DNA from: Macrostomum lignano | Lineage: Eukaryota | Assembly: GCA_002269645.1 (NCBI GenBank) | Contig: NIVC01002210.1 | Location: 124,001-188,000 of the forward strand | Direction: 5' to 3' | DNA length: 64,000 nt | Part shown: positions 6,597 to 64,000 of the stretch, in pieces | Layout: each line of letters opens with the position of its first letter | Position numbering within the stretch: position 1 is the stretch's first letter | Made by a program: the position numbers and the translations under genes | Notes under the pieces: generated by a model | What the model was told of the DNA's origin: nothing | The model's input: only the letters and a program-made list of their open reading frames with translations | The model's database searches: none

Positions 6597-6621
6597 TAAT
6601 TAATAAATCAATTAATTAATA

Positions 6622-6652
<31 letters not shown>

Positions 6653-6653
6653 T

Positions 6654-6692
<39 letters not shown>

Positions 6693-30606: not shown

Positions 30607-30644
30607 GCAGTTTATTAAGTGCATCTCTATTGAGCATTAGGGAG

Positions 30645-31240
30645 TGTGTACATTGGCAGTAGGGTTCAGGGTCAGGGAGTGTACATTGGCAGTGGGGGTT
30701 CAGGGTCAGGGAGTGTACATTAGCAGTGGGGGCTCAGGGGTCAGGGAGTGTACATTGGCAGTGGGGTTCAGGGTCAGGGAGTGTGTACATTGGCAGTGGG
30801 GTTCAGGGTCAGGGAGTGTACATTGGCAGTGGGGGCTCAGGGGTCAGGGAGTGTACATTGGCAGTGGGGTTCAGGGTCAGGGAGTGTGTACATTGGCAGT
30901 GGGGGTTCAGGGTCAGGGAGTGTACATTGGCAGTGGGGGTTCAGGGTCAGGGAGTGTACATTGGCAGTGGGGTTCAGGGTCAGGGAGTGTGTACATTGGC
31001 AGTGGGGGTTCAGGGTCAGGGAGTGTACATTGGCAGTGGGGTTCAGGGTCAGGGAGTGTACATTGGCAGTGGGGGCTCAGGGTCAGGGAGTGTGTACATT
31101 GGCAGTGGGGTTCAGGGGTCAGGGAGTGTACATTGGCAGTGGGGGTTCAGGGTCAGGGAGTGTGTACATTGGCAGTGGGGTTCAGGGTCAGGGAGCGTAC
31201 ATTGGCAGTGGGGTTCAGGGGTCAGGGAGTGTACATGTCA
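30645..31240. repeat. 30-33-bp G-rich minisatellite between NUFIP1 and CLPB
   Basis: CAGGGAGTGTACATTGGCAGTGGGGTTCAGGGT. Confidence 0.95.
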
Positions 31241-31544
31241 GTGGGAGCCTGTCGAGGTTAAACTGTGAGCCAAGTGATGGAATGACAGCAAAAATTAGTT
31301 AACAATAAGGACACAATTTAGTCATAAATGCAACCATTCACTAAGATTGAAAATAATGGAACAGTTGTATTTGTCAAACAAGTAAGCGAGGACAGACTTA
31401 GGCACAAATTTTCACGAAGTTGACGATTGATAGATAATACGGCACTAATGCAGAAATGGAGAGGGAAATGCATTGTGACAATAATAACAAGATTTTATTA
31501 TCAAGTGACAGTCGGACTTCTTTTTGACTTGCTAATTTTTTAAA

Positions 31545-34500
31545 TTAACTAGACGCTTCATCACATCCAGCTTCATCTCCATCTTCATCGGTAGCCATAT
31601 CAGCTTCCTCATCTGCAGCCTCCCATTCGACATCATCGCAATCGAATTCTGGGGCTGCATCATCCACTTTGGCGTCATCAGTTTCAGCTGCCGCCCCAGC
31701 ATCAGTGCGGTGGGCTGGGGCAGCTGACTTGTCAATAGTTGGCGCATCGCTATTCAAGAAATCCGTAGAGCAGACGTAGCGCACGCATTGGAACAGCAGA
31801 TTGCGTTCGTGGCGAATGTGCCGAGACAGCAGCATCTCTAGTAGGGCTGGCCGCCTCAGGCGCATTGCTGGCTCCTGCGTGTTATAAAATGCTTCTCCTT
31901 TTAGAAGTGGACGGGGGATAGAAAGAAATAGATCCTCATCTATGGGAATAGAGGGGATATGGGAGAATAGATAGGGATAAAGGAAAAAATGTGGATAGAG
32001 GCGATAGATGGGGACAGAGGGGGAAAGAGGGGAATAGAGGAAAAAATAGGGGGGATAAGAGGGAATAGAGGGATAAAGAATAGAGGAAAGAGAGGTTTTA
32101 GACGGAGATAGAGAGGGGTAGAGAGGAATAAAGGAGGGTACATAGGGATAGGGGGGATAGAGAGGGTTAGGAAGGATTAAAGGAAGATAGAGGGGTAGAG
32201 TGGGATAAAAAGGGGTAGAGGGGGATAGAGGGGGGTAAAAGAGGGATAGAGGGGGATATAGAAGGGGTAGCGGGGTAGAGGGGGGTAGAGGAGGGGTAGA
32301 GGGGGATAGAGGGGGTAAAAGAGGGATAAAGGGGGGTAGAGAAGGGGTAGAGGGGGATAGAGGGGAATAGAGGAGGGGTAGAGGAGGGTAGAGGGGGATA
32401 GAGGGGGTAAAAGAGGGATAGAGGGGGATAGAGAAGGGGTAGAGGGGGGTAGAGGGGAATAGAGGAGGGGTAGAGGAGGGGTAGAGGAGGGTCGAGGGGG
32501 ATAGAGGGGTAAAAGAGGGATAGAGGGGGATAAAGGAGGGGTAGAGAGGGGTAGAGGAGGGGTAGAGGGGGATAGAGGAGGGGTAGAGGGGGATAGAGGA
32601 GGGGTAGAGGGGGATAGAGGAGGGGTAGAGGGGGATAGAGGAGGGGTAGAGGGGGTAAGGGAGGATAGAGGGGAAAAGTGGGAGTGAGTCGCAAAAATCC
32701 CGGCAAACAGATGAAATAGTCACAGGCGCAGGAGGGGCACTGTACACGAGACGCAGACGCACCTGCATCAGCCGCTCCCGACGACGATGAAGCATCAGCG
32801 CGGCATCAACGTGCCGTCGCGACTGACCGCAGCTCAATGATTCGACGGGGCCGCCCTCTGGCCGCTGTTTGTCCTTCTCTTTCTCAATCGAGTCATCCAG
32901 ATCGGCCTCAGTGGAGTCGGCAGACATGGAAGCTGATGAAGCATAGTTGGCAGCCAGACTGCTCAGCACAGTTGGCGGAGCGTCGGCTTCGGGATCTTCG
33001 ACATCGCCGATGAGCATCTCAGTCTTGCCATCGGGATTGTCGACGCCAGCATTCCGGGTGCCAGCGTCGTCATCGTCAGATTCGGACTCGACCAGACAGG
33101 CCGACAGAGGGTCGCGATGTCGGGCATCGGCTTCGCCGTCGGCGGCGCCAAACTCGGCTGCATTGGCCGAGCTGAGGATCTGGGAAGATGGTGGCTGAGT
33201 ATGAGGATCTGGGAAGATGGTAGCTGAGTATGAGGATCTGGAAGATGGTGGCTCAGTATGAGGATCTGGGAAGATGGTAGCTGAGTATGAGGATCTGGAA
33301 GATGGTGGCTCAGTATGAGGATCTGGGAAGATGGTAGCTAGAGTGCCGGTACCTGCTGATGCGAACCTCTGCCGCCTCGATGCTGACCCCAGCCACGACC
33401 GCCGCCGGCCCCGCGTCCTCGCCAGCCGCCGCCGCCTCTGCCGCCCATCCGGCCAAACTGCCGCTGCTGCACAACTTCGCCGCGCGCCTCTCGCGCCGCC
33501 GCCTCGCGTCGTTTCGCTTCGGCCCGTTCGGCTGTTGGGAAATTTTTGCGCCTCTCCCGACGCCAAGTGTCGCAATCGGCCTGCAAAATCTGATTGGCCA
33601 AGCCGGTGCGGTGCTGGTGCACAAAGTGCAGCTCAATCAGCTCCTGGCTGGCTGTGAACGGGCAGTCGGCCACCCAGCACTTGGCGTGCTCCGATTTGTG
33701 CCGCTCCAGCTCCGACTCGCTGCGGAAGTCGCGGTTGCAGCAGTGCCAGGGCGACACCTCTGCGGCGCCTCCTCGATCTCCGCCCACGCCTCTGCCTCTG
33801 CCGCTGCCTCGGCCGCGACCGCGAGAGAAGGCGAAGCCACGGCCTCTGTCGTTGAAGCGGTGCTGCTGATGATGCTGATGCTGCTGCTGTTGGTGATGCT
33901 GCACGTGACTGGTTCCTATATAATTATTATAATACAATATTGTCTTTACGAAATCTGCTTTAAGACAATGCTATTTAATTGATTGGGAAATCAAAAGCAG
34001 TAGTAGCCCAGGAACTGAGGATCTCAGAGGCCGGACTATCAACTCGGGATCTTGGAGGCTGGCCCTGCAACTGAGGATATGGGAGGCTGGCCCAGCAACT
34101 GAGGATCTGGGAGGCTGGCCCAGCAGCTGAGGATCTGGGAGGCTGGCCCAGCAACTGGGGATCTGGGAGGCTGGCCCAGCAACTGGGGATCTGGGAGGCT
34201 GGCCCAGCAACTGGGGATCTGGGAGGCTGGCCCAGCAACTGACGATCTGGGAGGCTGGCCCAGCAACTGGGGATCTGGGAGGCTGGCCCAGCAACTGGGG
34301 ATCTGGGAGGCTGGCCCAGCAGCTGGGGATCTGGGAGGCTGGCCCAGCAACTGGGGATCTGGGAGGCTGACCCAGCAACTGGGGATCTGGGAGGCTGGCC
34401 CAGCAACTGACATTCTGGGAGGCTGGCCCAGCAACTGATACTCTCAGAGGCTAGCCCAGCAACTGACACTCTGGGAAGGTGGCAGACAGCTCAAGGGTCT

Positions 34501-34732: not shown

Positions 34733-37426
34733 CTGAAATGAATAAAATTTTCAACTTTAAAAACACCTTTGCTAATTGCTCAAATTCAACTTGAAGTTAA
34801 ACCTGAAAAAAAACAAAATGACTAACAGACTAAAACATGAAAAGTACATTTGGGAAAATGAAAGTGGGAAAATGAAAATATTGTTGGAATTAAATTTAAG
34901 TTACATTTATATGAATTAAAGGAAGGAATTAAGTTAAATTTCAACAAAGGAATAGAGATTAGTGCCAAGTAAATTTCAGTTTATTTCAATTGGCCTAGCT
35001 AACTAGTCTTGTTAATACATATAAAGATTCTATTTACTTTGATATATTTATTTGGATAATTTTTTCAAATGTATATTTAACTTAAATTTGCTTTGTTGCA
35101 AACTATGATGGTTGCTAAAGCTAGTAAATCAATGCAAAGCATTAACTATTATACAAAATGAAATATATTAATAACTGCATCAATTTATATAGCTCCATGC
35201 CATAAGCAAATTCATTTTCTACATAGCTAAAGTCAGTAAATGTTGTTTCATCAATATCAATAACATATTCCTAAGGAAAACTTTAAAAAAAGATCATTAA
35301 TTTTCATTTTCATAAGTCATACTCATATAACTTTTTTAATTATAGGTAATAACGAATATTAATAAATGCTAAGAGACAATTTCTCTAGTATGATCATGGG
35401 CTACATACATGCACAACAGTCAGCCGAGTTGGCCGACCAATTTGGCGGCCAACCAAGGTTAAGTTGCAAAAATGCCCACCCCAAAGAATACAGGCATTTA
35501 GCCTTTATAAGACAGTCATAGTTACTCTTGCCGTTTACCCAAAATTGTGTTAATTTCGCTTTAGGGTTTCTTTCATAGGTAAGTTGCATTTTTGGCCAAA
35601 AAACTACGTCACATTTTTTGTTAAAACTAAGTCACATGGCTGACCAAATTTTGGAGGTTGTGCATGTATGATCGGGCTAGTTAATTCTTGAAGTTAAATG
35701 GCTTATATAAAGCATAAAACTTAATACTTATAAACCTAAAAACTAATGCCAGTGATCTTTATAAAATAAAACTTAATAAGCTTTAAAAGCAATAAGCAGA
35801 CTTAGGGCCAGGCTCTAGCAATCTCTCAGAAAGATAATGTTTCCTATTAATAAAAGAACTAAAAATTTTAGTTAGGCTTAACTAAAATGAATTGGGATAA
35901 TATAGAATATTGCCTTTTTAAAACAAGTATAAATCAATATTTATATTAATTCAATATATTTTAATGATCTAGTCAATATTTAAATATGTGGAATTATATA
36001 AGAATAGAGATTTTTCAATTGTGCTTTGTTGAATAATATAAATGTAGTAATTACTCATAAAAATTTCAATTTTAAAAATCTTATTCAATGACTTATTGTC
36101 ATTAAAGAAAGATATATTTCAATTTTTAAATCAATTAGTAAGTAATTGTTAATACTATTTGTAAAAATCTGGGCTTCCTACCACCTATGTTTTTGTGCTA
36201 TAAGTATTGATTATTATTATTATGTCTTTACTTTATTCTAGGCCTAGTTCTAGGCATAATAAACATTGTCATAATATAATGGCTCATTCTAGATAAGATG
36301 GACATATTTGGAAAATAGAAAAAAGTCAATATTTTTGCTTACCATTGCCTTATCAGCCAATTTTTTTGTGCCAAATGTTTTTAATGTATAATATATATAA
36401 TCTAAGAATAAATGAATAGTAAAATGTTGGATTAGTATGTTATAAATTGGCAAAAAGTCATTTTTGTAAAAATTTGGACATTTTTCTAACTAAGCAAAAA
36501 ACACCATTAACTTTGTGTACCTTTGTAAAAAATAGAAAGCTTTAAAAGGTTGAAACAAACTAGAAACTATAGCAGCCTAAAATTATACTACTTGCATAAT
36601 CAGATAAAAACACTAGGAACCATATAATTATACATTGGTACCTAAACATTTTTTGAATTGACAGAAAAAATATGTTACAACCATAATGTTACGACCATAA
36701 GGCTACTTTTTATTTTGTATCTTTGTTACCTTTATGAGTTTACATATTCTAATAAAAGAGTATGCTTTCTGAAGATGTTCTTAGTCAAATATTTAAAAAT
36801 GTATTGCAAAGTATTAAAAATGAAAAATGTTATAAGACTTTTACCTTTTAGTTTCTATATGTCAAAAATCCTGTTGTTACAACCATAAGTGCCATTCAAG
36901 GTATAATAGCATCTATACTAGTGATGATATCTATATGAAACTATATAAAAAGATTCTTGTCAAAATCAACTTTTACTGGAAATATTGGTTTAGTATTTGC
37001 TATTATTATATTTCAGTTGAGTTAATAAGTAAAAATAGCCTGTCATGTTACGACCATAAATATATGGAATGGGCCTTATAATTGTTTGACATGAATTATG
37101 CCTCAAAAACCCAGGTCACCACATCCTTAGATATGAAAGGCTATTTTTGAATAGAATAGAGAATCCATTTGAATGTTGAGTTTTTAGTGCCAGTGGGTGG
37201 GATTGTTTCAAAAGTCAAAACTATGTAATGAATGTCGAATGAATGGTCTAAATAAATTTAACATTCATTTTTCTGGGATGTACAATAGGAAGGAGGGCCA
37301 TGATGATTCCTGAAATGTGTATCTGATTTAATTTACTCTGGCAGAAAAAACAATTACGTAATACATATGAAAAATCAAATGTTGATACAAAGAATGACTT
37401 AAACAGCATATGCTACCGCTTTAACC

Positions 37427-40328: not shown

Positions 40329-42780
40329 ATGGCAGCACAGGCTGAGGTGGTGAACCTGTCAAAACTTGTGGACATGGCGGTCGGCTCGCCAGAGCAGGGA
40401 GCTGTGAACTTCAACCTGCTGCACGGCCTTTTGCACGCCATCGTGGAGAAGCTGAACGATCCCAGCGTCAGCACCGACCGACTAATGAGACCGCAATCGG
40501 AGGCTGCTGGTCAGCCGGCGCAAGTCGGCGGTCAGAAGTCGGCTAAAAGCCGGCGCGATCTCGACGGCACCGAGTCGGTTGTGACCACCGACAGCGGCCT
40601 ACCTCGCGACGGCACCTTCGGCAGTGGCGGTGCAGGTAAATCAGCTTATATACCACATGTTTTGTCTTTACAAGTATGTCGCAACTTTTCCTGAGCAAGC
40701 AGCTCAAAATACCGTTTCTGAAGCTCAACGTTTGTTTGAAGCTCCATGATTGCGGAATTTCAAAGTTTTTCAAAATCAACCCTTTCTAGCTCGTGTTTCT
40801 CAAACCTAAACTAAAGCAAAATCGATTCCACGAACTCCCTCGATCTCAACGTTGATCTCATTCTCAGGCGGAGGCCTGAACTCAGAGCAGCTGCTCGACC
40901 GTCTGTCCAACGTGGAGACGCAGCTGGACGCTTTGAACAGCCTGCCGAGCGGCAAGGACGTCTTTGACCAGGTGTTCGGCAGCAAAGGCAAGTCGGATGG
41001 CCGAGCCACCGCGGACATGTTTCAGATGGTGCAGATGAGGCGCCGCACGGACGCTAATGAAGAGGGCGTTGCCAGGCTCTCGTCGCTGGTTGACGAGTTG
41101 ATGAAGGAGATGGGCCGTCTGCGCAAAGAAAACGAGAACCTGCGCTCGGAGATGAAGGACCTGTCCTCGATGAAGTCGGTGTGGGAGCGGCTGGCTCAGC
41201 TTGAGTCGCAGCTCAGCGAACTCCGCGACAGCATGCAGAATCTGCCGACAAAGGAGATGTTCAAGGACTTCGTCACCTGGGAGTCGCTGGAGAAGGCGCT
41301 GCGCGGCATCCGTGAGGACATGGCTCGGATGGCCAACCCGCCAGAGCGAGTTGTTGTCAACATGTCCACCGACCCGATGTCGCGGCCTCAGAGCCCCGGG
41401 CCGAGCGAGGCGCTGCGCGAGATGCTCGAGAGCCTCGGCAAGCTCACCAATCGGCACGAGAGTCTGGAGGTTCGCGTCGACAAGCTCGAGCACGAGATGC
41501 CAAACAAGGCTGACAAGAAGGATCTGGAGAACCTGAAACTGCCCGACGACTTGCTCAAACAGCTGAACGATCTTCGCTCCTTGGTTGACAACATGCGCCA
41601 GAGCCGCGACCGCGACGTGGAGGCCCTCAACCGGATCCGAAAGGCGCTCAGCGACCAGCAGAAGGAGCTCGAGAGAATCAACACCGTCTTAGAGGCCCTG
41701 GCGCAGGGCGGCAAAGATGTCGGAGAGAAGCTGCAAGAGCTGTTCCGAATCACTGCTCACCTGGACGAAGTGAAAGCCGACAAGGACTACCTTGACCAGC
41801 AGTTGGAGTCCAAGGCGGACAAAATCCAGCTGGACACCAAGGTCAACTTCAGCCTGTTCGACGAGACAACTGGAAACTTGAACTCACAGATTGACGAACT
41901 GCTGCAGAAGCTGATGGCAACCGAGGACGATCTTCGCCGACTGTTGAAGCTGCTCGGCGCCGATCTGGACGGCAAACTCGACCGGTTGGAGATGGACGCG
42001 CTGAAGGACTGGCTGGAGAAGCGGCTGAAAGCCCTCGCCGCCAAGATCAAGAGCGGCGGCGGCGCCGGGGTCGCCGACATCAACGAGGACGACGCGGCCG
42101 GGCTCAGGCGGCAGCTGCTGCAGCATTTCCACTGCATCTCCTGCGACCGGCCGCTGGAGATGGGCGCCCACCCGCCAGCGCCGTCGCTGCCGGAGAAGCC
42201 AGCACTCAGCGTCACGAAGTCGATGCGGCCGTACACCACCTTCGAGCTGGACTCCATCAGGCAGCACGCCAAGAGCGTTAACGCTGGAGAGATGCTGGAT
42301 GCCTACTACACTCCGCGGGCTGCGGGTGGGTCTCATACCCTCACTTATCCCAGCAAGAGGGTCACCCGCACGGCCGCAGTGCCGGAGGAGGACTACCACA
42401 GCCCGACTAGAGGCGCAGCGGCGGCCGCAGCGCCTCCGAACCGCGAGGAGACGGAAATCCAGGGCATGGACGGCCACATCTACAAGGGACGGATCGATCG
42501 ATTCTTCACTGAGGTTCGAGCCTCCGACGAGCCGCCGACAAAGCTGCCGCCAGTGTCCGGGGCGAAGAGCTCCGCCAGCCGTGGCAGCGGCACCAGCGGC
42601 GACGCCAGCGGTCAGAGACCGTCGACTAGCGGGCAGCAGCAGCAGCAGCGGCCGCACTCGAGCCGCGCCAGGCCGGTTTCAGCCCGCAGCGGCTCAGAAC
42701 AGCGCGGAGGCGGTGGCGATCCGCTGGGCCCCGCTCCGACGCCGAGCGTTGTTGACGTACCCGGAGGTGACGTCGAGTAG
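40329..42780 (+). CDS. QRICH2: QRICH2/C16orf96-like coiled-coil protein (DUF4795); exons 40329-40635, 40868-42780
   Basis: N-terminal LVDMAVGSPEQGAVNFNLLHGLLHAI, long coiled coil, and DDAAGLRRQLLQHFHCISCDRPL motif. Phase-1 intron. No Gln-rich repeat region, so the symbol means -like. Confidence 0.75.
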
Positions 42781-43619
42781 ACTATCTAGATAGGGGAGGT
42801 AAGCCAGTTGTTTCTAAATGCGTAGAGCTCAGTGTAAATAAATCTGGCGACAGGATTAAAAGGACAATTAATTCAAGCTCACTGAGCACAGTGGCCATCT
42901 TAAAATTATTTATCAACGCCTCATAAACATTTTTTTAGAATTCTTCGCGCCAAATATGAGCAACATTTAACTATTGAATTTTCTGATAAACTAAACTTTT
43001 ATTGATTATGTGTGCTTCCTCTATTCTGTCTGTCAACGATTATAACAAACTAAATTTTCATTTTTTTCAAATGATAATTAATGGTGCTTTCAGGCAGTGA
43101 GATTGTGTCGTTATTTGGACCAAAAATATTCTATCGAATTAGAGTAATGTTTAGCCTATTGATTTATAATATTATTTACTGACTGGCTGCTCAACTATCA
43201 AGTTTTATTGTGTACTTTTATGGCACCTCTGCTAATTGCTACACTGATTTGAAATTCTGATATTTTTCTCTTTCCTGAAGTGATATTTAATCGAATATTT
43301 TTTAGAACTTTTTTGTTATAACAAATCGAAAGTCTTCCAAGCCCTAGAAGTTTTGTGTTTTAACTCTATCAACTATGGGCTCGCCAAAGTGAACAAAAAA
43401 CTGTATGTAAAATGTACTTTTATTTGAAATCTATGTTTAGACTGTTATAAAGCAACAAAAAGTTTTCTTTATTTATTAGTTTTTGCTTCCAAATTCAACT
43501 GCTATTTTTTTCTTTGATCGAATTTGCTGTTTTCAATTTGCTCGCTTACTGTAGAAATGTCTTTATATTTAAATTTTGCTCTCTAACTTGTACATGTACA
43601 TTGTACACACTAATTGACT

Positions 43620-44500
43620 ACGAAGCTACCTGTTACTCGCAGCCTCAATCAAACGATGAAGCTACCTGTTATTCCCAGCCTCCATTAGGCGATGGAGCTA
43701 CCTGTTGTTCCCAGCCTCCATTAGAAGATGAAGCTACCTGTTGTTCCCAGCCTCCATTAGACGATGAAGCTACCTGTTGTTCCCAGCCTCCATTAGGCGA
43801 TGGAGCTACCTGTTACTCCCTACTTGAATCAAGCGATGAAGCTACCTGTTATTCCCAGCCTCCATTAGACGATGAAGCTACCTGTTGTTCCCAGCCTCCA
43901 TTAGACGATGAAGCTACCTGTTGTTCGCGGCCTCCATTAGGCGATGGAGCTACCTGTTGTTCCCGGCCTCCATTAGGCGATGGAGCTACCTGTTGTTCCC
44001 AACCTCCATTAGGTGATAAAGCTACCTGTTACTCCCTACTTGAATCAAGCGATGAAGCTACCTGTTATTCCCAGCCTCCATTAGACGATGAAGCTACCTG
44101 TTGTTCCCAGCCTCCATTAGGCGATGGAGCTACCTGTTGTTCCCAGCCTCCATTAGACGATGAAGCTACCTGTTGTTCCCAGCCTCCATTAGGCGATGGA
44201 GCTACCTGTTGTTCCCAACCTCCATTAGGTGATAAAGCTACCTGTTACTCCCTACTTGAATCAAGCGATGAAGCTACCTGTTATTCCCAGCCTCCATTAG
44301 GCGATGGAGCTATCTGTTGTTCCCAGCCTCCATTAGACGATGAAGCTGCCTGTTGTTCCCAGCCTCCATTAGACGATGAAGCTACCTGTTGTTCCCAGCC
44401 TCCATTAGGCGATGGAGCTACCTGTTACTCCCTACTTGAATCAAGCGATGAAGCTACCTGTTACTCCCAGCATCCAATAGACGATGAAGCTACCTGTTGC
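43620..44500. repeat. 36-bp minisatellite with higher-order variant periodicity
   Basis: GATGAAGCTACCTGTTGTTCCCAGCCTCCATTAGAC; a variant unit (CTACTTGAATCAAGC) recurs every ~5-6 units. Confidence 0.95.
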
Positions 44501-44944
44501 TCTCAAACTCGATCTTTTATTTCCTGTTTAATCAATGTCACAGTCACGTCACGTTTTGTGGTGTTATATAAGAATCTGCTGTTATTCCTCACTCAAAAAA
44601 CACTTTAAGAAAGGCAGTTTTTCACATTCGGTTATTTTTCGTATAGAAGTGCCCATCCGCCTTACCAATCCGTCCAATAGTATGCAATTCTGTTACTTCA
44701 GTAATATTGGAGCTGCATAGCATTGGCCATCTGTGTGCTCTCCGACTATCAACAAGTTTTTTTTTGCTTCAGCCAGAATTGGAATTATTTATTTTCTTAG
44801 AATATATTAATAGCAAAGCTAGAAAGCTTTTTCGATTTTAATCTATTTTTATGATTGGCTAATTAAATGGAATGCATTCTAAGAAATAAACATTATTTTC
44901 TGTCAAATAAAGTGTTTTATTTGTTTCTTCATTTCTCATTTGGG

Positions 44945-45368: not shown

Positions 45369-52414
<7,046 letters not shown>

Positions 52415-53130
52415 TTCTTTATTTTTGTTATAATTTACTGATTGAAATTATCTAAGCCGGAAAATTGGCGCACCCTTCACAAGCAAGGTTTTGCGTATTA
52501 AAAAAACTTTAAATGCTGATATTCGCTGCATTTTTATACCTGTCTGCAGTGTTCTTTTCTAATATGAAGCTAGATATTTCTGCGTATGTCGTATATATTG
52601 ATTTTAACTTTTTATTAGCCTTGTAGCGAATTATTAAACTTGCTTTAATTGTTGCTGTCTGAACAGTACAACTGACTTTTTGTTTGAGTACGTCTCGATT
52701 TCAAAATAAAGTTTATAAAAACTTCACTAGGCTACTCGTGTCAAGAAATATATTATGAATATTATTTCACCTGACGTTACTAATCTTACATAATCTTGAA
52801 AAAATCACATTTGCAGGCCAATGACTATCTTCGTTATGAATATTACTCTATACGCGCTCTTACTCTATTATTACTCTATTATGTGCTCTATACCTTAATT
52901 TGTTTTACTTGTAGAGTTACCTTCAACTGTTTAGTGTACTAGAATGTGCTTATCTGATGCATGACTCGAATTCAAATTCAAAAGTGCAAACGTGTAATGT
53001 ATACGTATAAGTAGTTGGGCATCAAAGTAAATGCAGATGAATGTCTGATGAATTTTCTCTTCCATTTTTCAGATTCGCGCAAGATTCTGCAAGGCCCTGT
53101 CTATCAATAAATGTAGGCATAAGCGTAAAA

Positions 53131-56100
53131 ATGGAAAAGCTACTACGCGATCTGCATCCAGAGCTGCAGGAAATGCTCACAAATGCGGAGGTTTCGCGAG
53201 ATTTTCGCCAACTCAAAAAGCACCTTAAAAGGCAACAAATGGAGTTGAAAAAAAACCTGAAGCAGCTGCAAAAGAAAGAAAAAGAAGAAAAAGAAACCAG
53301 CAGCGAGTCGTCCAGTAGTGAAAGTGATGAAGACGGCGATGACCAAATAGAGGCAGAATTGAAGGCCCTGTTTTTTTCCGTCCAAATGGGAGACGTTAGC
53401 TTGTGTAGCCATATTCTTCAAACGGGTGTCAGCGTGAATAGCCTTGGTCCAAAGAAGGCGACACCGCTACATTTGGCGGCGCACGAAGACAAAGCAGACA
53501 TTGCGAATTTGCTGCTGTCCAGGGGTGCCGATGTCAACGCAGTGGACCGTGACGGCGACACTCCGCTAATGCTTGCTGTAATGAAAAAGCATCGATTGCT
53601 CGTCCGCATTCTTGTTGAAAGGGGCACAGACCTGACAAATAAAAATAAAAAAAATCTGACTGCAGCTGATATAGCCTTAATGCTTGAGGACTTAGAGATT
53701 CTCGAGTTGCTAGAGGCAAAGCAGCAGGCCCTCCAGTATGATCCGAAAGTTCACGATGAAACCATTCTACGTCTCGTCTCGAAAGGAGAAAGGCAAATGA
53801 TTGACTATTGGCTGAAGAATTTCCCAAAGCAGGATAGCAAGCGTTCGGCCGATCAGCAGTACAAGGATGGTCGAACCATCGCATTCGCAGCGGCGCTCAG
53901 TGGCTCAATGGAAATTTTGGAACTCGTTGATAAATATGGAGCAAATCTGGATCTACCAGATAATTCAAATAGTTCTCCTTTGTTCTGCGCAGCACAGAAT
54001 GGATTCGAGAAGATTGTGAAGCTACTTTTGGAGAAAGGTTGTGACGTAAACCGTGTTAACAAAAACGGTAGAACCCCTTTGTTTTTTGCGATTCAGACAA
54101 GCAATTTGGGTATTTCAAAGCTTTTGATTGAGGCCGGAGCGGATGTGAACAAGAGAGATGCAAATGAAACTTGCCCTCTTGCTCACAGCATTCTGTCAGG
54201 AAGTCAAGAAATATTCGACTTGTTAATTGAAAAGAATGCAAACCCCAGAGTCTTCGACAAAGATGGACACGATCTGGTGATTCTTTCCACTTCATTCAAG
54301 CGATTCGAAATTCTTAAGAAGCTCCACAAGTTAGGCTTGCCTCTGGATCACGTGAACGAAAAAGACGGAGAGACACCTCTGCTGTCAGCTTGTCAAACAT
54401 CTTCACCGGAAGTTGTCAACTATCTACTTGACAACGGATGCAACGTTAAAGTGATGAATAAGAAAGGTATAACTCCAGTCCTAAGAGCAAGTGTGATGGG
54501 TGATCTAAAAACTGTGAAACGACTAAAGGAGCACGGAGCCCAGCTGGATGTTCCCGCGGTGTCTGGAGACACAGCCATTCTAGCTGCAGCTTTGCGGGGC
54601 AAGACCTCGCTAGTTGAATTCTTGTACAAAGAAGGCTGCAGCGTAACAACTTCAGATGATAATGGCAAGGGCTTGGCCCACCTCGCTGCCTCAAAAAGCG
54701 ACACTGAATTGCTTGATGTCATTCGTCGAGCATCAGCACCCCTTGACGAACAAAATAACAAAGGCAATACGCCTCTCATTATTGCAACAATTCAACCAGC
54801 AAATTTAGACCTGATAAAGCGGTTTATTGAACTCAAGTGCAACGTGGAGACAAAAAACAATAAAGGAAACACCGCTACAAGCATTGCAGTAGAGCAAGGC
54901 AGCGTGGAGGCCTTGAACTATCTGATCTCTGTCGGAGGTAACCTCGGGAATATTACAAAGACTGGTGAGACGACCACAATGCAAGCTGCAAAAGGCAATC
55001 ACCTTGAGGTTCTGAAGATTATAAGTACTTCAGCATCGCAGTCAAACGTCAATTCAACAGACATAAATGGGAAAACAGCGGTCCATTTTGCTGCTCTCTC
55101 TGGCCGGTTAGAGATAATTGAATTTCTGAAAAACGAGATGAAGGCGAACTGCGATTTGGCAGACAAGAATGGCAACACACCGTTCATGCTGGCTGCTGGC
55201 AAGGGACACAAGTCTGTGGCGGAGAAGCTGCTCGACTTTGGTGCTGACATTCATCTGAGAAATAAAAATGGTGAGAACTCCGCCCATCTCGCAGTGAAGG
55301 GAAATCACGCTGAAATGCTGAGGTACCTGAGCATGAAATCATTTAGACCAGGAAGACAAGGATGGCGTCACGCCCTTGATGCTGGCGTGCAAAGAGAAAA
55401 GCCTGGAAGCCGTTAATTTTCTTCTATCGAAAGGCTGCGCTAAAAACTCAGTGGCTAGAAACGGTCGCAAGCTGATCCACGCCGCCTGTGAAGGCGGCAG
55501 TTTGCCCGTGGTCAGGCGGATTGTCAACTTGGGCGAGCCGATCGACTCGAGAGATACGAGCGGTGTAACTCCACTAATGATCGCAGCCAGAGGCGGTTTC
55601 ATAAAGGTCGCCCAGTTTCTACTCAAAGAAAAGAAAGAGTTGTTATCAATGAGTGATGAGTCAGGGAAAACAGCCCTTGATCATGCAATTCTCTCTGACC
55701 ACGTGAAAGTAGTGCAATTACTAATTGAAAGTGGCAGTGACATTGAACATGTGATGGACGATGGCAGAACTCCGTTGCTACTTGCTCTCGAGAAGTCAGT
55801 CAAAGTGAAGCAGAAAGTGGCATCCTTACTGATCAATAGCGGATCCGATGTGTTTAAAAAAGCTGCAGATGGTCTTAGTTCAGCTCATGTAGCATGCAAA
55901 TTCAACAAGCTGCTCAGTCTGAAGAAGCTCATGGAAAAAGGAGTAGGTTTGGACACTCTCACGCAGAATGGTGATTCGTGTCTGACACTGGCAGTGCCGA
56001 AAGGTGACCCTGATCTCATCAATCTGCTACTTGAGTCCGAACTTGACAGAAGGCACACGAACTTGCAGGGACATTCCGCTGTGTCACTGGCGTGTCTGAG

Positions 56101-59100
56101 AGGAGATGAAAAAATATTTTCGATGATGTTTCCTTTGTCTTCCGATGAGACAACAAAACGATATTCAAATGACAATACGCTTTTGCACTTTGCCTGTGAG
56201 GGTGGGTCGAAAGAAGTGATACAAAAATTGATCACTGAACACCACATGGAAGTCGATGCAACAAACGACCGCTCGGAGACGCCACTGCACATCACCTGCC
56301 GCACTGGGAAGGACGACTTGGTTACTTTGCTGCTGCAGCAGCACCATGCGAATGTCAATGCTATTGATGACAAAGGAGAAACTCCAATTTTCCATGCTGT
56401 TGCCAAGGGCTCGATTGAAACGTGCTCCGCCCTGATCCGAAACGGCGCGGATCTGAATGCCGTTAATAAAGACGGAATCTCCGTTCTTTGCAAGGCGTAC
56501 TACGAAGGCAGGAGTGCAATCTTTCGGCTGCTCAAGTCTAAACACCCAACTATAAACGCCAATCTAAAGCAGTTGCCTGGAAATATCGGCATATTCTCGC
56601 AAAATATGAAAAATATGAATATAAAAGTTTTAAAGCGTTTGTTTGATGAAGGCCTCCCTGTTGACAGACGCGAAGGCAGCGCACACTTGCTGCACCATGC
56701 CATCGAGTTTTGCCGCAGCGATATTATCAACCTTCTTTTAGACAAGAATGCCGAATTGAGAGTAAAGGACGTTAACGGACGCACTCCTTTATTTCAATCA
56801 ATTATACATGGCAGAATCGATGTGGCAACCAAAATCCTATCGCAATGCCCTGAAGCCAAAGATGATGTTGACAACGATGGCAATACTATACTACACATAA
56901 TAGTTCTAAGCGGCAAACCGAGCACGCTACAGTGGATTCTCGGTAAATATACATTCGATAAGACCCAAGCCAACAAGAGTGGCAGGACGGCATTGCATGT
57001 TGCAGCTGCTGTCGGAAGCATGGAGATGTACGAGATGTTGCTCAAGAAAGGCTGGGATGCTACAAACAAAATAAAAGCTAGCGTGAATTCAAAGACAAAA
57101 GTTAGCGTTGGACATCTTGCCGTTCTCTCTGGCAACATGAGCTTTGTTCGACAGCTGCATGAAACTGGCGTCCTATCGAAGCACATCGGCAAGACCGGTC
57201 CCTCTATTCCTCAGCTACTTGCACAAGCGGGCCAGATGAAAACACTCGACTGGTTTTGTCGATCCACAGGAGTCAACTTTGAAGACTCTGGCTTCTTGTC
57301 TGTAAGAAATGCGGCGTTCGTCAGTGGCCACGAGCAGATGGCTGACTGGATTATCAAGAGGGGAGTGGATTTAGAGCAGAGAGACAGCACAAATGGCCAG
57401 CCAGGCTCCCTAGCTGCGGTGCTTGGTGGGAACTTTCATATTGTAAGAAAGATTTTTGAAGAACAACAATGCAGTACTTCCGCTCGCACTAAGCATTGCT
57501 CCAGCCTGCTGCACATGGCTGTCTGCTCAAGGAACGAACCGCTGCTGCGCTATGTCCTCCAAAAAGGATGCCCAAGAGAGGAAACTGACAACGATGGGGG
57601 CACACCGATATTAGAGGCTGTGTGGGCTTCAAATTGTAGGTTTGTGAAAATATTGCACTCGGAGTACCAGTGCAATCTTAAAAAAGAATGCAAGCTGCAA
57701 TTCAATGCCGCTCACTACGCTGCAATAACCGGAAACCTTGAAATATTTGAGTACATAAAGCAGCACCTGCCAGAAGCATACTTCGACGCATGTAACATAC
57801 ACGGAAACACACCGTTAATGCTGGCTGTTTTGTATTCAAAATCCGAGTCTGTCAAATACTTGTTGGAGAAATTTAGTCCGGAAATTGACAATAAAAATAA
57901 GACTAGTAGCACGGCTCTTCACTGGGCCGCGCTAAATGCGGACAAGAATATCACGGAATTGCTGCTGGACAGAAACCCAACTGTGGACATCCAGGACATG
58001 GATGGCGCTACACCTTTGATGCTGGCTGTTCAGTCGGATTCAGTCGATTGCGCTGACCTTCTGCTGAGAAAGGGTGCATCAGCTACGACGGAGAACACTT
58101 ATGGAGAGAGCGCATTGACTCTCATGCAGCACAGCAAGGATGAATCTATGCGGAAATTGAGTGAAGAGTTGCAGGAACAACTTCAGTTGGAGCGGCAAAG
58201 CGGGTAGGAATTTCTGAACCTACGCTATATTCAAAATCAACTTCTATTATTTCAAAATTCTTGCCAAAAAACTCCGCAACACTCTTCTAGGCCTGTATTT
58301 GGACACTCGCTGGGACACTGCTCCCTCAAAAGCATTCACTACAACGACCACTTTCCCGAGGAAGAACCCGCTGAGCAGCTGGACGAGTCAGACGTCGAAA
58401 TTGAAGACGAGGCGAACGAAGAGCCCGAAGCAGTTCAACAACAAGATGAGCCATATCAGGCTCAGAGCGAAGTACGAGCACCGTCAGTGATCAGCAGGCG
58501 CACAGCTGGCAGCGCTGTGACTAGGACATCAGTGCCACAGTCTGAACGACCATCGGAAGGGTTCGTGCATAAGTTTTTGAGCTTCATAATAAATTATAAT
58601 TCACTGTATGCAAACTAGGCTGTGAAGTGGGTTCGGTTGAAACCTTATTTAACGGAAGCTTGGGTTGGATAACCTATTTTGCCGTAGTAAATTAAATAAA
58701 TTGATATAAAAATTTATAAAATAAATAAAATAAAACAAATTTATAAAATTGATATTAAAATATAAAATTTAAATTGATATAAATTAAAACAATATTTTCA
58801 TTACCCCGTTTCCAGGCGACTCAGAGGGAATGTGATCAGCACTGAAGTCTATGAGGCTGGCAAATCGACTGTTTCTATCAAGATTGTCAACCCTACGGAA
58901 GCCAATATACAGCAAGCGATCAAATCTCTTGAAGAGCTAAGAAAACTTGTGAGCGAAAGGGACGTTGTAGAAAATCATCTTTGCCGTATGCAACCACCGA
59001 GCCTCTGTATTGAAGTGAAGACAGATCAGCCTGGTCGGCCACTGGAAGATCATTTAGAAGAGCTGCGAGACCGAGAGCATCGCTACCTCCCAGAAGGCAC

Positions 59101-59635
59101 TGGCCTTAAAACCGCCAAGTCAATTCTCTCCGGATTGAAATATCTTCATTCAAAAGGCATTGTACACGGGTGCCTTCGGCTGACGAACATACGAATTGTT
59201 GGCGAGGAAATTAGGCTGGGACAGTACGGCCAGCTGATGCGCATAAGCAGACTCAGCCAGCACTATCAACAGCCCGGCTACTGGCGCAGTGATCCGTTTA
59301 CCGCGCCTGAGGAGCGTCAACTGACTGGAACTGGCGCGATCGACCGATTATTTACGACATCAACAACAGCTGTGGACATGTGGGCGTTCGGCTGCACCTT
59401 GCACGAGGTTCTAATCGGAGCCCCGCCAGAACGGGGCGCGGAGAACCTTGGCAGCGACGCCGATTATGTGACTCGCACATTTGCTAGAGTTCAAAACCTG
59501 GACAATGTGCCCAGTACCATGCTACAGCAGCGTCGGATCTTTCCGGAAAATCTTCAGAATGCTTTTCTGAGAGTCTACGTGAAGCTGCCTGAGGATAGGC
59601 CTTCCGCTCCGACTCTTCTGAACGATCTTCAATGA
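53131..59635 (+). CDS. Giant ankyrin-repeat (~45 repeats by length) pseudokinase, ~2,050 aa; exons 53131-58203 (frame break at ~55340), 58291-58560, 58816-59635
   Basis: ORFs 53041-55416 and 55376-58207 are continuous ANK arrays. Phase-2 introns 58204-58290 and 58561-58815 join an acidic linker and a kinase-fold ORF (VSIK, HSKGIVHGC, LGQYG, TAPE, DMWAFG). Confidence 0.8.
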
Positions 59636-61499
59636 AGAGCAAGTTGTTTTTGAATTACGCTCGTAAATACTGTAATGAATTTTGGCGTTTTTGTTTCGAA
59701 CACTATAAAATTGAACACTCCAAGCATATGCTATCTTTTTGCACCCTTCTTCTTTTCTGCAGTTTCATGGGATGAAATTTTAAGTTAACTTCTCTTGTTT
59801 TAATCAAAGAGTACCCTTGAGGGTCACCGAGTCTCGGTCTCGAGTCGGTCTCGGTCTGAGGGTCTCGGTGAGGGTCACTGAGAATCCACGGACGTCTAAC
59901 CTCCTTTCACCAATGGTATACGTGTACGAGAAAATCATCCAAAACTTAGAAATCAGATATAGTCCGAACAATAGTTGAGGCCGAGGCATCGGGTGCCCTT
60001 TTGAAGTTACTTTAAATTTAATGTAACTCGTGCCTTGAATCAAGCTACATGTACACCTAGGTCGAGTCAGTTCTAGGTAGCTAAGGAGAAGACCGGTCCA
60101 TGGCCCTCTCCGATGCTTTGAAATTTTTCCTGCAGTGTTCTTCACCACTTCTATTCGAGTGTTGCCGTATATATGTAATCGAGCTGCATTAACCTTCCAA
60201 TGACCTGCATAAACCCCCTAGAATGAGAAGCCTGAGTGACCAGACGGCCGACTCTAACTACTCGCATTAACCTAAAATATGTTATTTAGCCGATAATGCA
60301 GTTGTTTTTATAATTTGTCGCTATATATTATCGACAAAACTTTATTCACATCTGCACATGCACAAAATATTCAGTTGAAATTATATATTTTGGACAATGA
60401 GTTGGTGCATATTGTGTAGTACGTCGTATTGGTGTATGTGCTACCATTCATACTCGTACATACATGAACATAAACATGATAACGAATTTCTTCCGTTTTT
60501 TAAACTTTTTATGTGCCCATGTGTATTACTTATACGCTCGTAGCTACAATCTCTCTGTGTATTTCTGCCATTATTTATTCTGCTTTGTGCTTTGAAGTAA
60601 TTTTTACTCGTGGCTATCTGGTGCGTTGATCGCTATGAAATTTTTATTTAGTGCCGTTTCTCTTCTCTCTAATATGTCTAACAGTCTAACAACTTTTACG
60701 CCAAATAGTAATCAATGGCTATTATGAAAATATACGCTAGTACGAATAATGTTTTAAAAATTACCTAAATTTACTCCTCAAATGCACGCACATGTACGCA
60801 GTTGCACTGCTTGTGCAGGTATACTATCAAAATTCTGAAGTACAAGTGTATATAGTACATTAGCTGGGGCAAGGTCCGGGGAACCGCGCTATGGTGCATT
60901 GCAGTTCCTTGCATGGGCGGTGGTGGCGTACATGTACATGATACATGTAGATAGGGTTTCTAATCATTTCCAGGGCGCCAGCTATCCATGCACATGTTTA
61001 AATGTATAAAGTGCAGTTTTTTTTTCTCGTGCGTTTATATGCACGCTCATATGCATGTAAATAGATTTACATGTACATGCCTGCACAATTACCTTGTACC
61101 GGAAGAATTCATGGAGAAGCAGTGCATGCATGGTTTCGGCCAAAACCTGCTTCCGCAAGCCACCCGGCAGGCTCGCGACTAGTAGGCTGCAAGCGGAGGC
61201 AGTGGAATGCGCGCGGCCGGAATGCGTCACGGAGGCAGGCACAGCTCGATCACGTGCTTGTGCGTCTTCTTGAGCGCCGCCGCGACGTCAACTGTCGTGC
61301 CATAACGCCGATATCGTCGTGATACCATCGGCTCCGCGTCTGCGATCTACGTCTATGGGATCCGCTCTACCGTCTGCTGAAGCGGCCACCGCGGTGCTAC
61401 TACATGTGCACCGAGACATGTCGCCATTTCGCCAGCGCCTTCGCCAGGGCGTGCCAGAGTACGAGGAGTAAGTCTAGGCTGTCTACCTGCAATAAAAAC

Positions 61500-61978
61500 A
61501 GGCAGCTGTTGATGACCACCGCCACCGCCGCTGAACCCGACGCCAAATTAGGGCCCGTGGCCTGGTCCGCCGTCAACGCTCTGACCGGGCGGAAGCCTCG
61601 CATCCCGCTTAACCTAGCTGGCGACACTCTAGATGAGTGCATAAATGTCGAGCTGCGCAATCGAGTGCTTCACCGCCATCGTCAACGCGCCGCGGCTTCA
61701 ATGTATAGCCCCAGTCAGCACAGCCGACTTGTTGTGATGCTCGTGCCCATGAAGCTCACTCTGGCGGCAAAGCGCTGGATCTGGACATGGTGCCCATCGA
61801 GGCGCTGCGACAATACTCTGCAGTGGCCAGCGAGGTAGCCATGCAGTGTGATGATGCGCTTTTTGGAGAGGCGGCACATCGACGCACATCGTCGGTTTTC
61901 CAAAGAAGCCCGGCACCTTAACGTTAAAGGAGCGCCGAGGCATCTGCCTGCAGTCCTGCGCCCCGAAGCTGTTCAACC
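61500..61978 (+). mobile_element. Degenerate non-LTR retrotransposon (RTE-type) fragment, N-terminal RT region
   Basis: Frameshifted motifs GGKALDLDMVPIEALR (GKAxGPDxIPxE type), FPKKPG and RGICLQSCAPKLFN (RGISLxSxxxKxFN type). Confidence 0.6.
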
Positions 61979-63411
61979 ATGTGAAATAGTGAGGGTTGTC
62001 TTGGGGTGGTCTGGTGGGTCTTTGAATCCCACCGCTGCCACCAGTAGAGTACAGAGCTTTAATTTCCTTCCTGATTTGCAGGCACTTAAGTTCTGCCTTA
62101 AGCCTCGAGCCTCTCAGCTCGGAAGTCTTCTTGTAGCTCTTAGTAGCGTAGGTAGTGCTGCCACCAGTTCCTTCAGGTCTCGGCCTTCAGTGAGGTGAGC
62201 TTCCCGTCCCAACGAAATAAACAAGTCAACGAACTCAGCACAGCGTGCAGATTTCAAGATTAACGAACAAGGCGTCTGGTCAGCAGATCCCACCGGGTTC
62301 AGTGGGTGGTGGGGAGGCCGTATTAGCCTCCTTTAGGCTTGGGCGTCTAAGTTTAGTCAGGCCAATAAAGGAAGAGTTGATTGGACAATAGAACTGTCAG
62401 AAAAACTTTCAGAAACTGAGAAACTATAGACACTAAGAACGGAGAAACTAAGAAATAGATTGGAAAACACAAACTTAAGAACTTCCTTGACTGAACCAAG
62501 GCTTAGGGGTCCGTATTTATGGCCTGGGATTCTCCACTGCCCCAATGCGCACAAGACCTCGTGACTTTGTTCTATTTTTAGAACTGACGTCACTTGGGTC
62601 CTCGGGCAGAGTGCACCAGGCTGTGACTCAATGTCTAATTTTAGAAACATGAGTCACTCCTTTCCTTAGGGAAGGGAAGGGCTTGGACAACGTGATTCCT
62701 CAGTAAACACGGACCAAACACGGACTTCGAGAAAACAAGACTGTCATGTGACTTGCTTACATAACAAAAACAGGCCACCAGCGTGACCTCAGGACAGGAA
62801 CGAAACGCAGAGCAGGCCACAGCAGAGAAGCTCGTGGCTACAAGCAAGAGCGCAGAGAAGAGGGGGCGGGCGACAGAGAACAGGCAGAAAGATTGGAGGA
62901 AGGCTGCCCAGCGGCAGACAGCAACCCAAGGGCGAGGGCGAGGGAAACTGCTGACAATACTGCGACGCCTGACACCAAACTAGCGGCTCACTACATGCAG
63001 ATACTGCTTATTGCGGTTGCAGTCCGTGCTGTGATCCGTATTTGCGGCCTGAGCAAAAACGCGGGTTCCAGCCCCATCACGGCAGAGTGATGCAGATTCT
63101 GGTTTTTTGCCGAATTATGCTGCCAGCGTGGGCGCCCCAAATACTTCCGGTGGTGCGGCTCAGGCGTTTGCGCTCAGGCTTCGAAACGAGCACTGTGACG
63201 TTCTCAGCTCTCTCATGGCTCGCGTGACATTAATTGTTTATTTACAACGTATTTTGTTGCTGTTAATTTTGGTACATGTAAATTGAGGAACTTTTCGCAT
63301 TCGAAAAGTAGAACTTAGCTACGAGTACTTACATGGTACAATCAGATAGCTAATATAAACATGTAGTTATTTACAACATACAGTATACAGTATTTACAAC
63401 AGTATTTACAA

Positions 63412-63856
63412 CGTCCAGAGGGCGGCGTTGTTCCAGGCGGTGATCGAGACCGTCCTGCTGTACAACGCCGAGACCTGGACGCTGACGGAGTCGCTCTAGC
63501 AAACAAATTGACGCGGCGCATGCTGGTCTGCTGCGCGGTCACCTTCAAGATCGGCTACGAGCGAGTGACCAACGCGGCTTTGTATCGCCGCGCCGGCCTG
63601 GTCCGTCCAAGCGATCTATTGCACCGTCGGCGACTCCAGCTGGCAGGCCACATCATCCGTGCTGAGTAACTGCCGAGAGAGCCGGTGCAGGAGGTGCTGC
63701 TAACCGCTGCAGGCACCCTATACTACCTACGGGGGCAGGCGCGCACTCAGCATTTCGTCGACTGCCTGCTGGCTGACGCCGGCGCCCCGGATTCGGCCGG
63801 CGGCGTGGCGTTCATTCGCGACCTGAAGGCGCGCCCTATGACGCTAACTGCGTATT

Positions 63857-63901
<45 letters not shown>

Positions 63902-63940
63902 CATGTTGTTGCTGTTGTTGTTGTTGTTGTTGTTGTTGTT
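63412..63940 (+). mobile_element. Degenerate RTE-type LINE 3' end with (GTT)n tail
   Basis: ALFQAVIETVLLYNAETWTLT, VTNAALY and RRRLQLAGHIIR with stops/frameshifts, followed by a (GTT)n tract at ~63858-63940. Confidence 0.75.
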
Positions 63941-64000
63941 AAACAGTATAGACAACAAGACTGCTGTACATTCATTATCAATGCAATCGAGTGTTTAGCT

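Follow-up and report, generated by a model that had tools for sequence, protein, structure and literature searches.

The combination of ANK repeats with a pseudokinase is already known from ILK and RNase L. In RNase L, 9 ANK repeats and a pseudokinase are followed by a KEN ribonuclease domain at the C terminus; ILK combines 4-5 repeats with a TKL-type domain, and TNNI3K consists of a coiled coil, 10 ANK repeats, an active TKL kinase, and a Ser-rich tail. Here, we describe a gene of the flatworm Macrostomum lignano whose conceptual product joins about 47 ANK repeats to a C-terminal kinase fold that is predicted to be catalytically dead. The gene occupies positions 53131-59635 on the + strand of a 64,000-nucleotide stretch of contig NIVC01002210.1 (positions 124,001 to 188,000 of the forward strand, assembly GCA_002269645.1). 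This stretch is referred to as the window, and coordinates are those of the window unless another locus is named. Sequence comparison places the gene as a derived, long-form member of a Macrostomum-specific family, and a non-catalytic scaffold is the role that we consider most likely for it. The original prediction, made from the letters of the window, had pictured a giant ANK-array pseudokinase of unusual, lineage-specific architecture with a possible role in immunity or cell death. The protein has already been deposited, from an intact sister copy, as an uncharacterised hypothetical protein. We found no paper on it, and searches of the literature and its supplements for the gene identifiers, for flatworm ANK pseudokinases, and for the Macrostomum kinome returned nothing.

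Results

One gene in three exons

The gene model was built from the list of open reading frames (ORFs) and manual splice assignment. Long reading frames in the region run from 53041 to 55416 (frame 1), from 55376 to 58207 (frame 2), and from 58832 to 59635 (frame 2). With the ATG at 53131 and the stop codon at 59633-59635, a conceptual product of 2053 amino acids (aa) is obtained once one base is skipped near 55339. Exon 1 (53131-58203; ORF list, gene model, and Pfam) holds the start codon, the N-terminal segment, and the complete ANK array, and is broken by a frameshift in the window copy. Exon 2 (58291-58560) encodes a linker with an HYNDHFP motif and an acidic run, EEEPAEQLDESDVEIEDEANEEPE, and has a homologous exon (HYYDHFP followed by an acidic run) at a paralogous locus, L005. 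Exon 3 (58816-59635) encodes the pseudokinase fold and the stop codon, as supported by Pfam and by sequence matches to kinase domains in the PDB. The exons are separated by intron 1 (58204-58290, 87 nucleotides [nt]) and by the AT-rich intron 2 (58561-58815, 255 nt), both of which follow from the sequence, the frame translations, and the gene model. From N to C terminus, the product comprises a short helical segment, an acidic Ser-rich tract, the ANK array, an acidic linker, and the kinase fold. Apart from the Ser-rich tract, this is the domain order of the original prediction, and both Pfam and the gene model bear it out.

The ANK and kinase exons are, judged from the sequence, joined in one gene, because both introns are of the GT..AG type in phase 2 and a single frame is preserved across them, and because the summed intron length equals that of the annotated sister gene, which spans 6507 nt with a coding sequence of 6165 nt and thus leaves 342 nt of intron (87 + 255 in the window copy). 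Exon joining had been put forward as a check on the prediction, and it comes out in favour of a single gene. The 2054-aa sister model itself appears, from the naming of its locus tag, to rest on a transcript that links the ANK and kinase exons; for this assembly, the genes were annotated from transcripts assembled both de novo and with guidance from the genome, and TransDecoder was used to call the ORFs (PMC5730564). M. lignano makes polycistronic precursors, and about 7% of its assembled transcripts encode at least two proteins (PMC5730564), such that the ANK exon and the kinase exons could be imagined as two genes, e.g. units of a trans-spliced precursor, with the 2050-aa protein as an annotation artefact. 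We consider this very improbable. In addition to the canonical phase-2 introns and the single stop-free frame, the kinase exon has no Met ahead of the N-lobe, the same three-exon layout recurs at L005, and the short-form paralogs described below carry ANK repeats and kinase in one unbroken ORF on RNA-derived contigs.

Upstream of the gene, a polypyrimidine tract that ends in AG (53053-53072, + strand), 58 nt 5´ of the ATG, is a candidate 3´ splice or spliced-leader acceptor. Within intron 2, the stretch 58690-58790 is made up of AT-rich imperfect repeats (aaatttataaaat, aaattgatata).

A kinase fold without its catalytic residues

The last 270 aa match the Pkinase family (PF00069) with E 3.4e-16 and 59.9 bits, against a cut-off of 31.7, over profile positions 23-259 of 263. 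The state of the individual motifs was read from an alignment with intact paralogous kinase domains. The Gly-rich loop (58823-58843) has degenerated to RGNVIST, compared to GEGxFG (GEGNFG or GEGGFG) in the paralogs. The catalytic loop (59165-59188) reads HGCLRLTN versus HRDIKCSN, with loss of the catalytic Asp and retention of the Asn, and QYG is found in place of DFG (59222-59230), with loss of the metal-binding Asp. Other hallmarks are retained: the beta3 Lys (58871-58882; VSIK versus VAVK in the paralogs), the APE motif (59303-59311), the DMWAFGC of subdomain IX (59375-59395), which in the form DxWAFGC is common to the intact kinases of the family, and the Arg of subdomain XI (59588-59602; PEDRP). 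The paralog alignments thus confirm the motif states originally described for VSIK, APE, DMW, HGC, QYG, and the missing Gly-rich loop.

The requirement of these motifs for phosphotransfer is established in kinase catalysis. With both Asp residues and the Gly-rich loop lost together, phosphotransfer by the domain is predicted to be very unlikely, in agreement with the earlier view of a dead kinase. A domain that is not fully dead would have to make do with the beta3 Lys, Glu residues of a putative alpha-C helix (LEELRKL), the Asn of the catalytic loop, and APE, and could in that case bind nucleotide or perform an atypical catalysis, acting as a nucleotide-dependent switch. We regard this as unlikely, both from the simultaneous loss of the three elements and from the N-lobe of the second long form (see below), in which the region including VAIK is not conserved.

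The domain has few close relatives. Among 1.84 billion representative proteins, the only match to the kinase exon below E 1e-30 is its own sister copy, and the next follows at E 1e-19, which upholds the description of the gene as lineage-specific. Sequence searches of the PDB with the domain gave weak and unspecific matches (7t6f, GCN2, PLK2/3, BRAF, ACK1, PDK1, and ASK1), and a profile of the two long-form domains performed likewise, with 7t6f at the top (E 3.8e-14). This entry is a full-length JAK-family kinase that was matched at both of its kinase-like domains and has VHGN (HGN) at the aligned position. ILK, RNase L, TNNI3K, MLKL, and STRAD were all absent from the best 60 PDB sequence matches, whether the domain or the long-form profile was used. 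A word-indexed protein search gave no match with the C-terminal 362 aa, and with a profile of the N-terminus it returned generic ANK proteins alone, at 23-35% identity. This search apparently covers proteins up to about 1.75 times the length of the query, which would explain why the 2054-aa sister copy was missed.

The closest non-self relatives of the dead kinase domain (P0002, P0003, P0006, and P0004) have tandem kinase-like domains. One of them, of 2911 aa and from an ENA assembly, was matched in 10 stretches; two others come from tardigrades, and a 788-aa example with three domains comes from M. lignano itself.

A family with active, dead, and kinase-less members

The best 150 relatives of the kinase domain were screened with an ANK hidden Markov model (HMM). 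Beyond the sister copy, an ANK array was found only in P0084 (PAA71750.1, Mlig002250g2; 6 repeats detected), a 1180-aa protein of M. lignano; P0043 gave a single weak ANK match. P0084 aligns colinearly with the window protein over the N-terminal segment and the first ~16 repeats, with 36% identity across 564 aa (E 3e-112), and then carries two complete kinase domains with intact GxGxxG, VAVK, HRD, DFG, and APE motifs. The best PDB matches of these kinases are MST3, MST4, STK25, NEK7, ASK1, SLK, and TNIK (E 1e-34 to 1e-31). By their best matches, which are of the STE type together with NEK7, the intact kinases of the family are STE-like. In phmmer comparisons, the window kinase domain matches P0084 with E 2.8e-15 and a second family member, P0280, with E 1e-10.

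Searching with P0084 brought up further members of the family. One intact kinase is present in each of Mlig024438 (P0280, 880 aa), Mlig023526 (P0282, 863 aa), and P0281 (877 aa). The latter is 79% identical to P0280 and is encoded by one unbroken ORF on ~3.2-kb contigs from runs SRR28338163/4. Among longer proteins, Mlig004077 is represented by partial models of 1811 and 1468 aa (P0283 and P0284) and has a dead kinase, and no kinase was found in Mlig023247 (P0286 and P0290, 1764 and 1430 aa) or in P0285 (1824 aa). Over 1661 aligned aa that take in the entire array, the window protein is colinear with P0283 and 45.5% identical to it; with P0285 and P0286, it is colinear at 27-28%. Thus, the gene is not one of a kind. 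It shares its N-terminus and ANK array with a family in M. lignano that includes short forms of 863-1180 aa.

The dead kinase of Mlig004077 was found at locus L005, where tblastn and translation revealed, downstream of the partial public models, an exon for an acidic linker (HYYDHFP...) and one for a complete kinase-like domain. The kinase exon, ...LSGLAYLHSNSITHGRLTLASI...LSDYG...DPWTAPE...DMWAFGCTLHEALIGCPPE...RIFP..., has HGR for HRD, DYG for DFG, TAPE, and DMWAFGCTLHE. It is 38-39% identical to the window domain and conserved in the C-lobe. HGx is common to two lineages that are only 45% identical, which implies long-standing retention of a dead domain. Therefore, the comparison indicates that the dead state is older than the split of the two long-form lineages and has been retained since. 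As to the public models of Mlig004077, two parts of L005 lie outside the 1468-aa model: 7498-8006, which has N-terminal coding sequence and an apparent frame change near 7880, and 12386-13905, with the exons for the linker and the kinase.

The third long-form lineage is different in this respect. At the Mlig023247 locus, no kinase-like sequence was found within 8 kb downstream, and P0285 lies on contigs of 5.8-6.0 kb that are apparently complete mRNAs without a kinase domain. Active, dead, and kinase-less members therefore coexist in the family.

The assignment of the window gene to this family, as a derived long-form member, is based on its sequence: the N-terminus and the ANK array are colinear with those of the other members, and the kinase domain is of the same lineage, with DxWAFGC. 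Within the 64-kb window, no paralog of the gene was found, and a gene at 46.2-48.8 kb has only generic ANK similarity to it. The claim of an unusual architecture accordingly needs to be qualified. It stands insofar as the kinase falls outside ILK, RNase L, and TNNI3K, the well-known ANK-kinase families in which it might have clustered; it does not stand as to singularity, because M. lignano paralogs of the same architecture exist and long ANK-(pseudo)kinases are found elsewhere as well.

The N-terminus and the ANK array

The first 280 aa were modelled by AlphaFold2 from an alignment of six family sequences, with a mean predicted local distance difference test score (pLDDT) of 82. The N-terminal segment (aa 1-54; 53131-53292) is rich in K, E, and Q and differs in length and sequence among the paralogs. 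It is predicted to form two helices, at aa 2-19 and 25-54, with pLDDT 51-73. No Pfam family matches it, and two helices within 54 aa do not make a four-helix bundle. It is followed by the acidic Ser-rich tract TSSESSSSESDEDGDD (aa 56-71; 53296-53343), which is predicted to be disordered (pLDDT about 41-43 for aa 54-68) and resembles acidic tracts in the paralogs P0283 and P0084. The N-terminus had been described as a helical or coiled-coil segment of ~70 aa. The helices are recovered, at low to moderate confidence, and aa 54-68 are disordered in the model.

A confident ANK stack begins at about aa 68 (pLDDT >90). It includes a stretch at aa 185-245 that is specific to the family, kept in all paralogs, and folded within the stack. 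The array as a whole extends over aa ~75-1665 (53353-58126). In Pfam, ANK families cover the first 1691 aa, with 22 stretches matching Ank_2 (E 8.7e-202). Iteration of an ANK HMM on the protein found 40 repeats between aa 77 and 1648, and the gaps between them fit 6-8 degenerate ones, for a total of about 45-48 (~47); the extent agrees with the colinearity with P0283. The earlier figure of ~45 repeats is thus upheld, and the accompanying statement that they lie in one ~5-kb exon holds only with the reservation that this exon is split between two reading frames in the window. Recent internal duplication as the source of the long array was ruled out, as exon 1 has no significant matches to itself at the DNA level. 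This lack of self-similarity implies that the array is old and diverged and not the product of a recent tandem amplification.

The architecture raises the question of a sensor in innate immunity or cell death, in which the ANK array would sense a ligand and the pseudokinase would act as the switch, as in RNase L or MLKL. The succession of ANK repeats and pseudokinase is the plan of RNase L, HGx in place of HRD is found in the JAK pseudokinase domain (7t6f, VHGN aligned) and also occurs in MLKL, and the family is lineage-specific and multi-copy, as is typical for immune gene families. These likenesses are outweighed by what the protein lacks. A Pfam scan of the whole protein gave nothing beyond ANK and Pkinase, i.e. 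no KEN/Ribonuc_2-5A (PF06479), death-fold, TIR, NACHT, or ZU5-UPA-death domain; the absence of a KEN domain had been part of the original prediction. The protein terminates directly behind the kinase fold, with no tail, and the N-terminus, with its two low-confidence helices, is no four-helix bundle. Moreover, the kinases of the family are STE-like, and RNase L, MLKL, and ILK are outside the best PDB matches. A sensor of this kind, proposed by analogy, seems unlikely, and nothing in the domain content supports the role in immunity or cell death that had been suggested.

A frameshift in the window copy and an intact sister gene

In the window copy, exon 1 consists of two frames, not one, with a change from frame 1 to frame 2 near 55340. 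The ANK pattern runs on only if the frame is shifted by +1 at this point. The two frames overlap at 55334-55416, where frame 1 gives ...LRYLSMKSFRPGRQGWRH... up to a stop and frame 2 gives NHLDQEDKDGVTPLMLACKEK after a stop. Alignment with the DNA of the intact sister copy shows that five nucleotides, GTGTT, are missing between 55340 and 55341 (frameshift site, 55339-55341). Translated literally, the ORF ends at a premature stop (55414-55416) and gives a product of 761 aa. A protein of ~2050 aa at the window locus exists only if the frameshift is ignored, and the original prediction, which assigned a product of this size to the window copy, had overlooked it. Two candidate introns were considered as a means of rescue and rejected. 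The sole frame-restoring GT..AG pair (55271-55346, 76 nt) would remove most of a good ANK repeat and is unsupported, and a 24-nt GT..AG pair leaves the frame unchanged.

The sister copy is PAA83693.1 (UniProt A0A267GCE0; 2054 aa), recorded from M. lignano as "hypothetical protein BOX15_Mlig016864g1" and the sole member of its own 90% cluster. Its gene is intact and sits on scaffold NIVC01000411.1 of the same assembly (locus L001). An alignment of the two proteins has 90 differing positions, none of them beyond residue 1241, and the last ~810 residues are identical, including the entire kinase exon (100%). At the DNA level, the genes have 150 mismatches, every one before 56957. A second indel relative to the sister copy is an in-frame insertion of 3 nt in the window (56335-56337). 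From 56957 to the window end, about 7 kb that include the 3´ 2.7 kb of the gene, the copies differ by only two small indels. Because the flanks of the window gene and of L001 align, the copies are taken to be allelic or homeologous.

The ratio of nonsynonymous to synonymous substitution rates (dN/dS) between the copies is 0.39 overall, with 0.39 upstream and 0.41 downstream of the frameshift. From this similarity on either side, it follows that the frameshift is recent or an artefact of assembly. The window copy is either a very recently disabled duplicate or an intact gene in which the deletion is an assembly error. In the former case, it could be a pseudogene, i.e. a recently inactivated duplicate without a function of its own that represents the still-readable remains of the functional sister gene. 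Several observations fit. The 5-bp deletion is in a non-homopolymer context and introduces a stop after 761 aa, and a dN/dS of 0.39 is compatible with some relaxed constraint. By exact look-up, the literal 761-aa product has no record in the protein collection, in which the sister copy is present. The assembly contains 180 Mb of duplicated blocks with at least 95% identity (PMC5730564). However, the deletion is the sole lesion in 6.1 kb of coding sequence, dN/dS is the same downstream of it as upstream, and from the last 2.7 kb of the gene to the window end, the window is virtually identical to the intact copy. A small indel error is also possible in the assembly, which for the public sister copy is PacBio-based (PMC5730564). 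We consider a pseudogene possible but not probable.

The divergence between the two copies is mosaic. Comparing window 52880-64000 to L001 9742-20874, it is about 4% over 52880-56956 and then limited to the two small indels in 7 kb, a pattern that points either to a chimeric assembly or to homeologous copies having recently undergone gene conversion or recombination. Just 5´ of the gene, L001 holds ~5.6 kb of extra sequence (4093-9742) that is absent from the window (52848-52880), and farther upstream of this difference, the window and L001 are only 87-92% identical.

Surroundings of the gene

The window is rich in tandem repeats, which make up 15% of the M. lignano genome together with simple repeats (PMC5730564). 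At 49940-51016, a ladder of BLAST matches to L001 810-1552, offset by ~34 nt, reveals a minisatellite whose period is about 34 nt. Further tandem minisatellites, at 1478-1969, 2681-4165, 7052-8593, 17682-19963, 26574-27442, 28104-29172, 30644-31302, 43514-44608, and 46500-48400, give rise to long, repetitive, mechanical ORFs on both strands and in more than one frame that are not genes. Neighbouring gene fragments are found at 769-1296 (+), 23270-30624 (-), 33341-33937 (-), 40852-42777 (+), and 46241-49022 (+). The identities recognised among the neighbours are an ionotropic glutamate receptor (Lig_chan), a ClpB D2-small domain, a NUFIP1-like zinc finger, a DUF4795 coiled coil, and an unrelated small ANK-repeat gene. 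An ORF at 30133-30624 has no Pfam match and is possibly the N-terminal part of the ClpB-like gene. Finally, a dispersed repeat of ~0.8 kb (36278-37070) lies in an AT-rich part of the window (fractional G+C content 0.32-0.36 at 36-40 kb) and has two copies, inverted relative to each other, on the downstream side of the sister gene (L001 21856-22642 and 22900-23683). It is probably a transposable element.

Discussion

On balance, we favour the interpretation that the gene is a long-form member, with a dead kinase, of a Macrostomum family and that its product is most likely a non-catalytic scaffold. The members of the family are built on a common plan, with a short helix at the N terminus, then the ANK array, and then an STE-like kinase. 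In the long form, the solenoid of ~47 repeats would bind partner proteins, and the acidic, probably disordered linker would connect it to the dead kinase fold, which would act as a docking or allosteric module. A speculative extension would have the dead domain pair up with the kinases that are intact in the short-form paralogs. The idea comes from the tandem arrangement already found in the family, with two kinases in P0084, and from dead kinase folds that often regulate active relatives, as do STRAD, KSR, and JAK JH2.

Several observations weigh against the favoured interpretation. Due to the frameshift, the window copy may yield only a 761-aa ANK fragment, and the dN/dS of 0.39 signifies only moderate constraint. 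Between the two long forms, there is little conservation of the kinase N-lobe, including the VAIK region. For the kinase domain, AlphaFold2 reached a pLDDT of only 40 from an alignment of seven sequences, and the assignment of the fold comes from sequence profiles only. The third long-form lineage is apparently kinase-less, and the domain may be dispensable or decaying. Furthermore, no literature was found that names the gene.

A more far-reaching interpretation is that the long-form pseudokinases and the short-form kinases together constitute a flatworm-specific signalling module that evolved independently of ILK and RNase L. In such a module, the solenoid of ~47 repeats would be a sensor or a spring-like platform, and the dead STE-like domain would switch the active paralogs on or off in a manner resembling STRAD and LKB1 or JAK JH2 and JH1. 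We regard this as a doubtful possibility.

Whichever role is assumed, the presence of active, dead, and kinase-less members side by side provides a natural series for the transition from a kinase to a non-catalytic module. M. lignano is amenable to RNA interference. Transgenesis is available as well (PMC5730564), and the two methods make the question testable. The practical importance is otherwise modest, since lineage-specific expansions of ANK proteins and kinases are common in invertebrate genomes.

Comparison with known systems

The nearest counterparts of the window gene are its own, uncharacterised paralogs. It shares the N-terminus, the first ~16 repeats, the kinase lineage, and DxWAFGC with the short forms (Mlig002250/PAA71750.1, Mlig024438, and Mlig023526). 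These have about 16 repeats in 863-1180 aa and one or two kinases with intact GxGxxG, HRD, and DFG, whereas in the window gene the repeats number ~47, an acidic linker exon has been added, and the kinase is predicted to be dead. Mlig004077 has in common with the window gene the three-exon layout, an array that is colinear at 45.5%, the acidic linker exon, and a dead kinase with HGx and xYG. It differs in keeping the DFG Asp (DYG) and in a strongly diverged N-lobe, and only partial models of it are public.

Outside the family, RNase L has the same succession of N-terminal ANK repeats and inactive kinase fold, but its KEN domain has no counterpart in the window protein. RNase L-like proteins of 1600-1860 aa (ANK, Pkinase, and Ribonuc_2-5A; P0289 and P0346) are present in public assemblies, with generic ANK identity of ~25%, and P0288 combines ANK repeats with a pseudokinase and a TKL-like kinase. 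More generally, ANK arrays of about 700-1300 residues are combined with kinases or pseudokinases in public proteins of 1600-1925 aa that are unrelated to the window protein and have ~25% generic ANK similarity to it. ILK is similar in having ANK repeats followed by a pseudokinase that is used as a scaffold; the intact kinases of the window family are STE-like and differ from it in this respect. TNNI3K has an N-terminal helical segment, ANK repeats, and a kinase domain, but the kinase-fold domain of the window protein is predicted to be catalytically dead and has no tail behind it. The N-terminal four-helix-bundle executioner domain of MLKL has no counterpart in the window protein.

The likeness to STRAD-alpha, KSR, and JAK JH2 concerns only the proposed mode of action, in which a dead kinase fold is paired with an active kinase. 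STRAD is a pseudokinase of the STE20 group. There is no evidence of orthology to any of these proteins, and they have no ANK array. Long, protein-binding ANK superhelices are also found in ankyrin-1/2/3 and in the PP6 regulatory subunits ANKRD28/44/52, which give generic matches at 24-29% identity. The ankyrins differ in having ZU5-UPA-death modules, and their 24 repeats compare to an array roughly twice as long in the window protein. A C-terminal kinase fold is absent from the ankyrins and the PP6 subunits alike. If the long forms are functional, they would represent a third independent route to a scaffold of ANK repeats and pseudokinase, alongside ILK and RNase L. Relative to these two systems, what is new here is the STE-like lineage of the kinase fold, the array of ~47 repeats, and the family of active paralogs.

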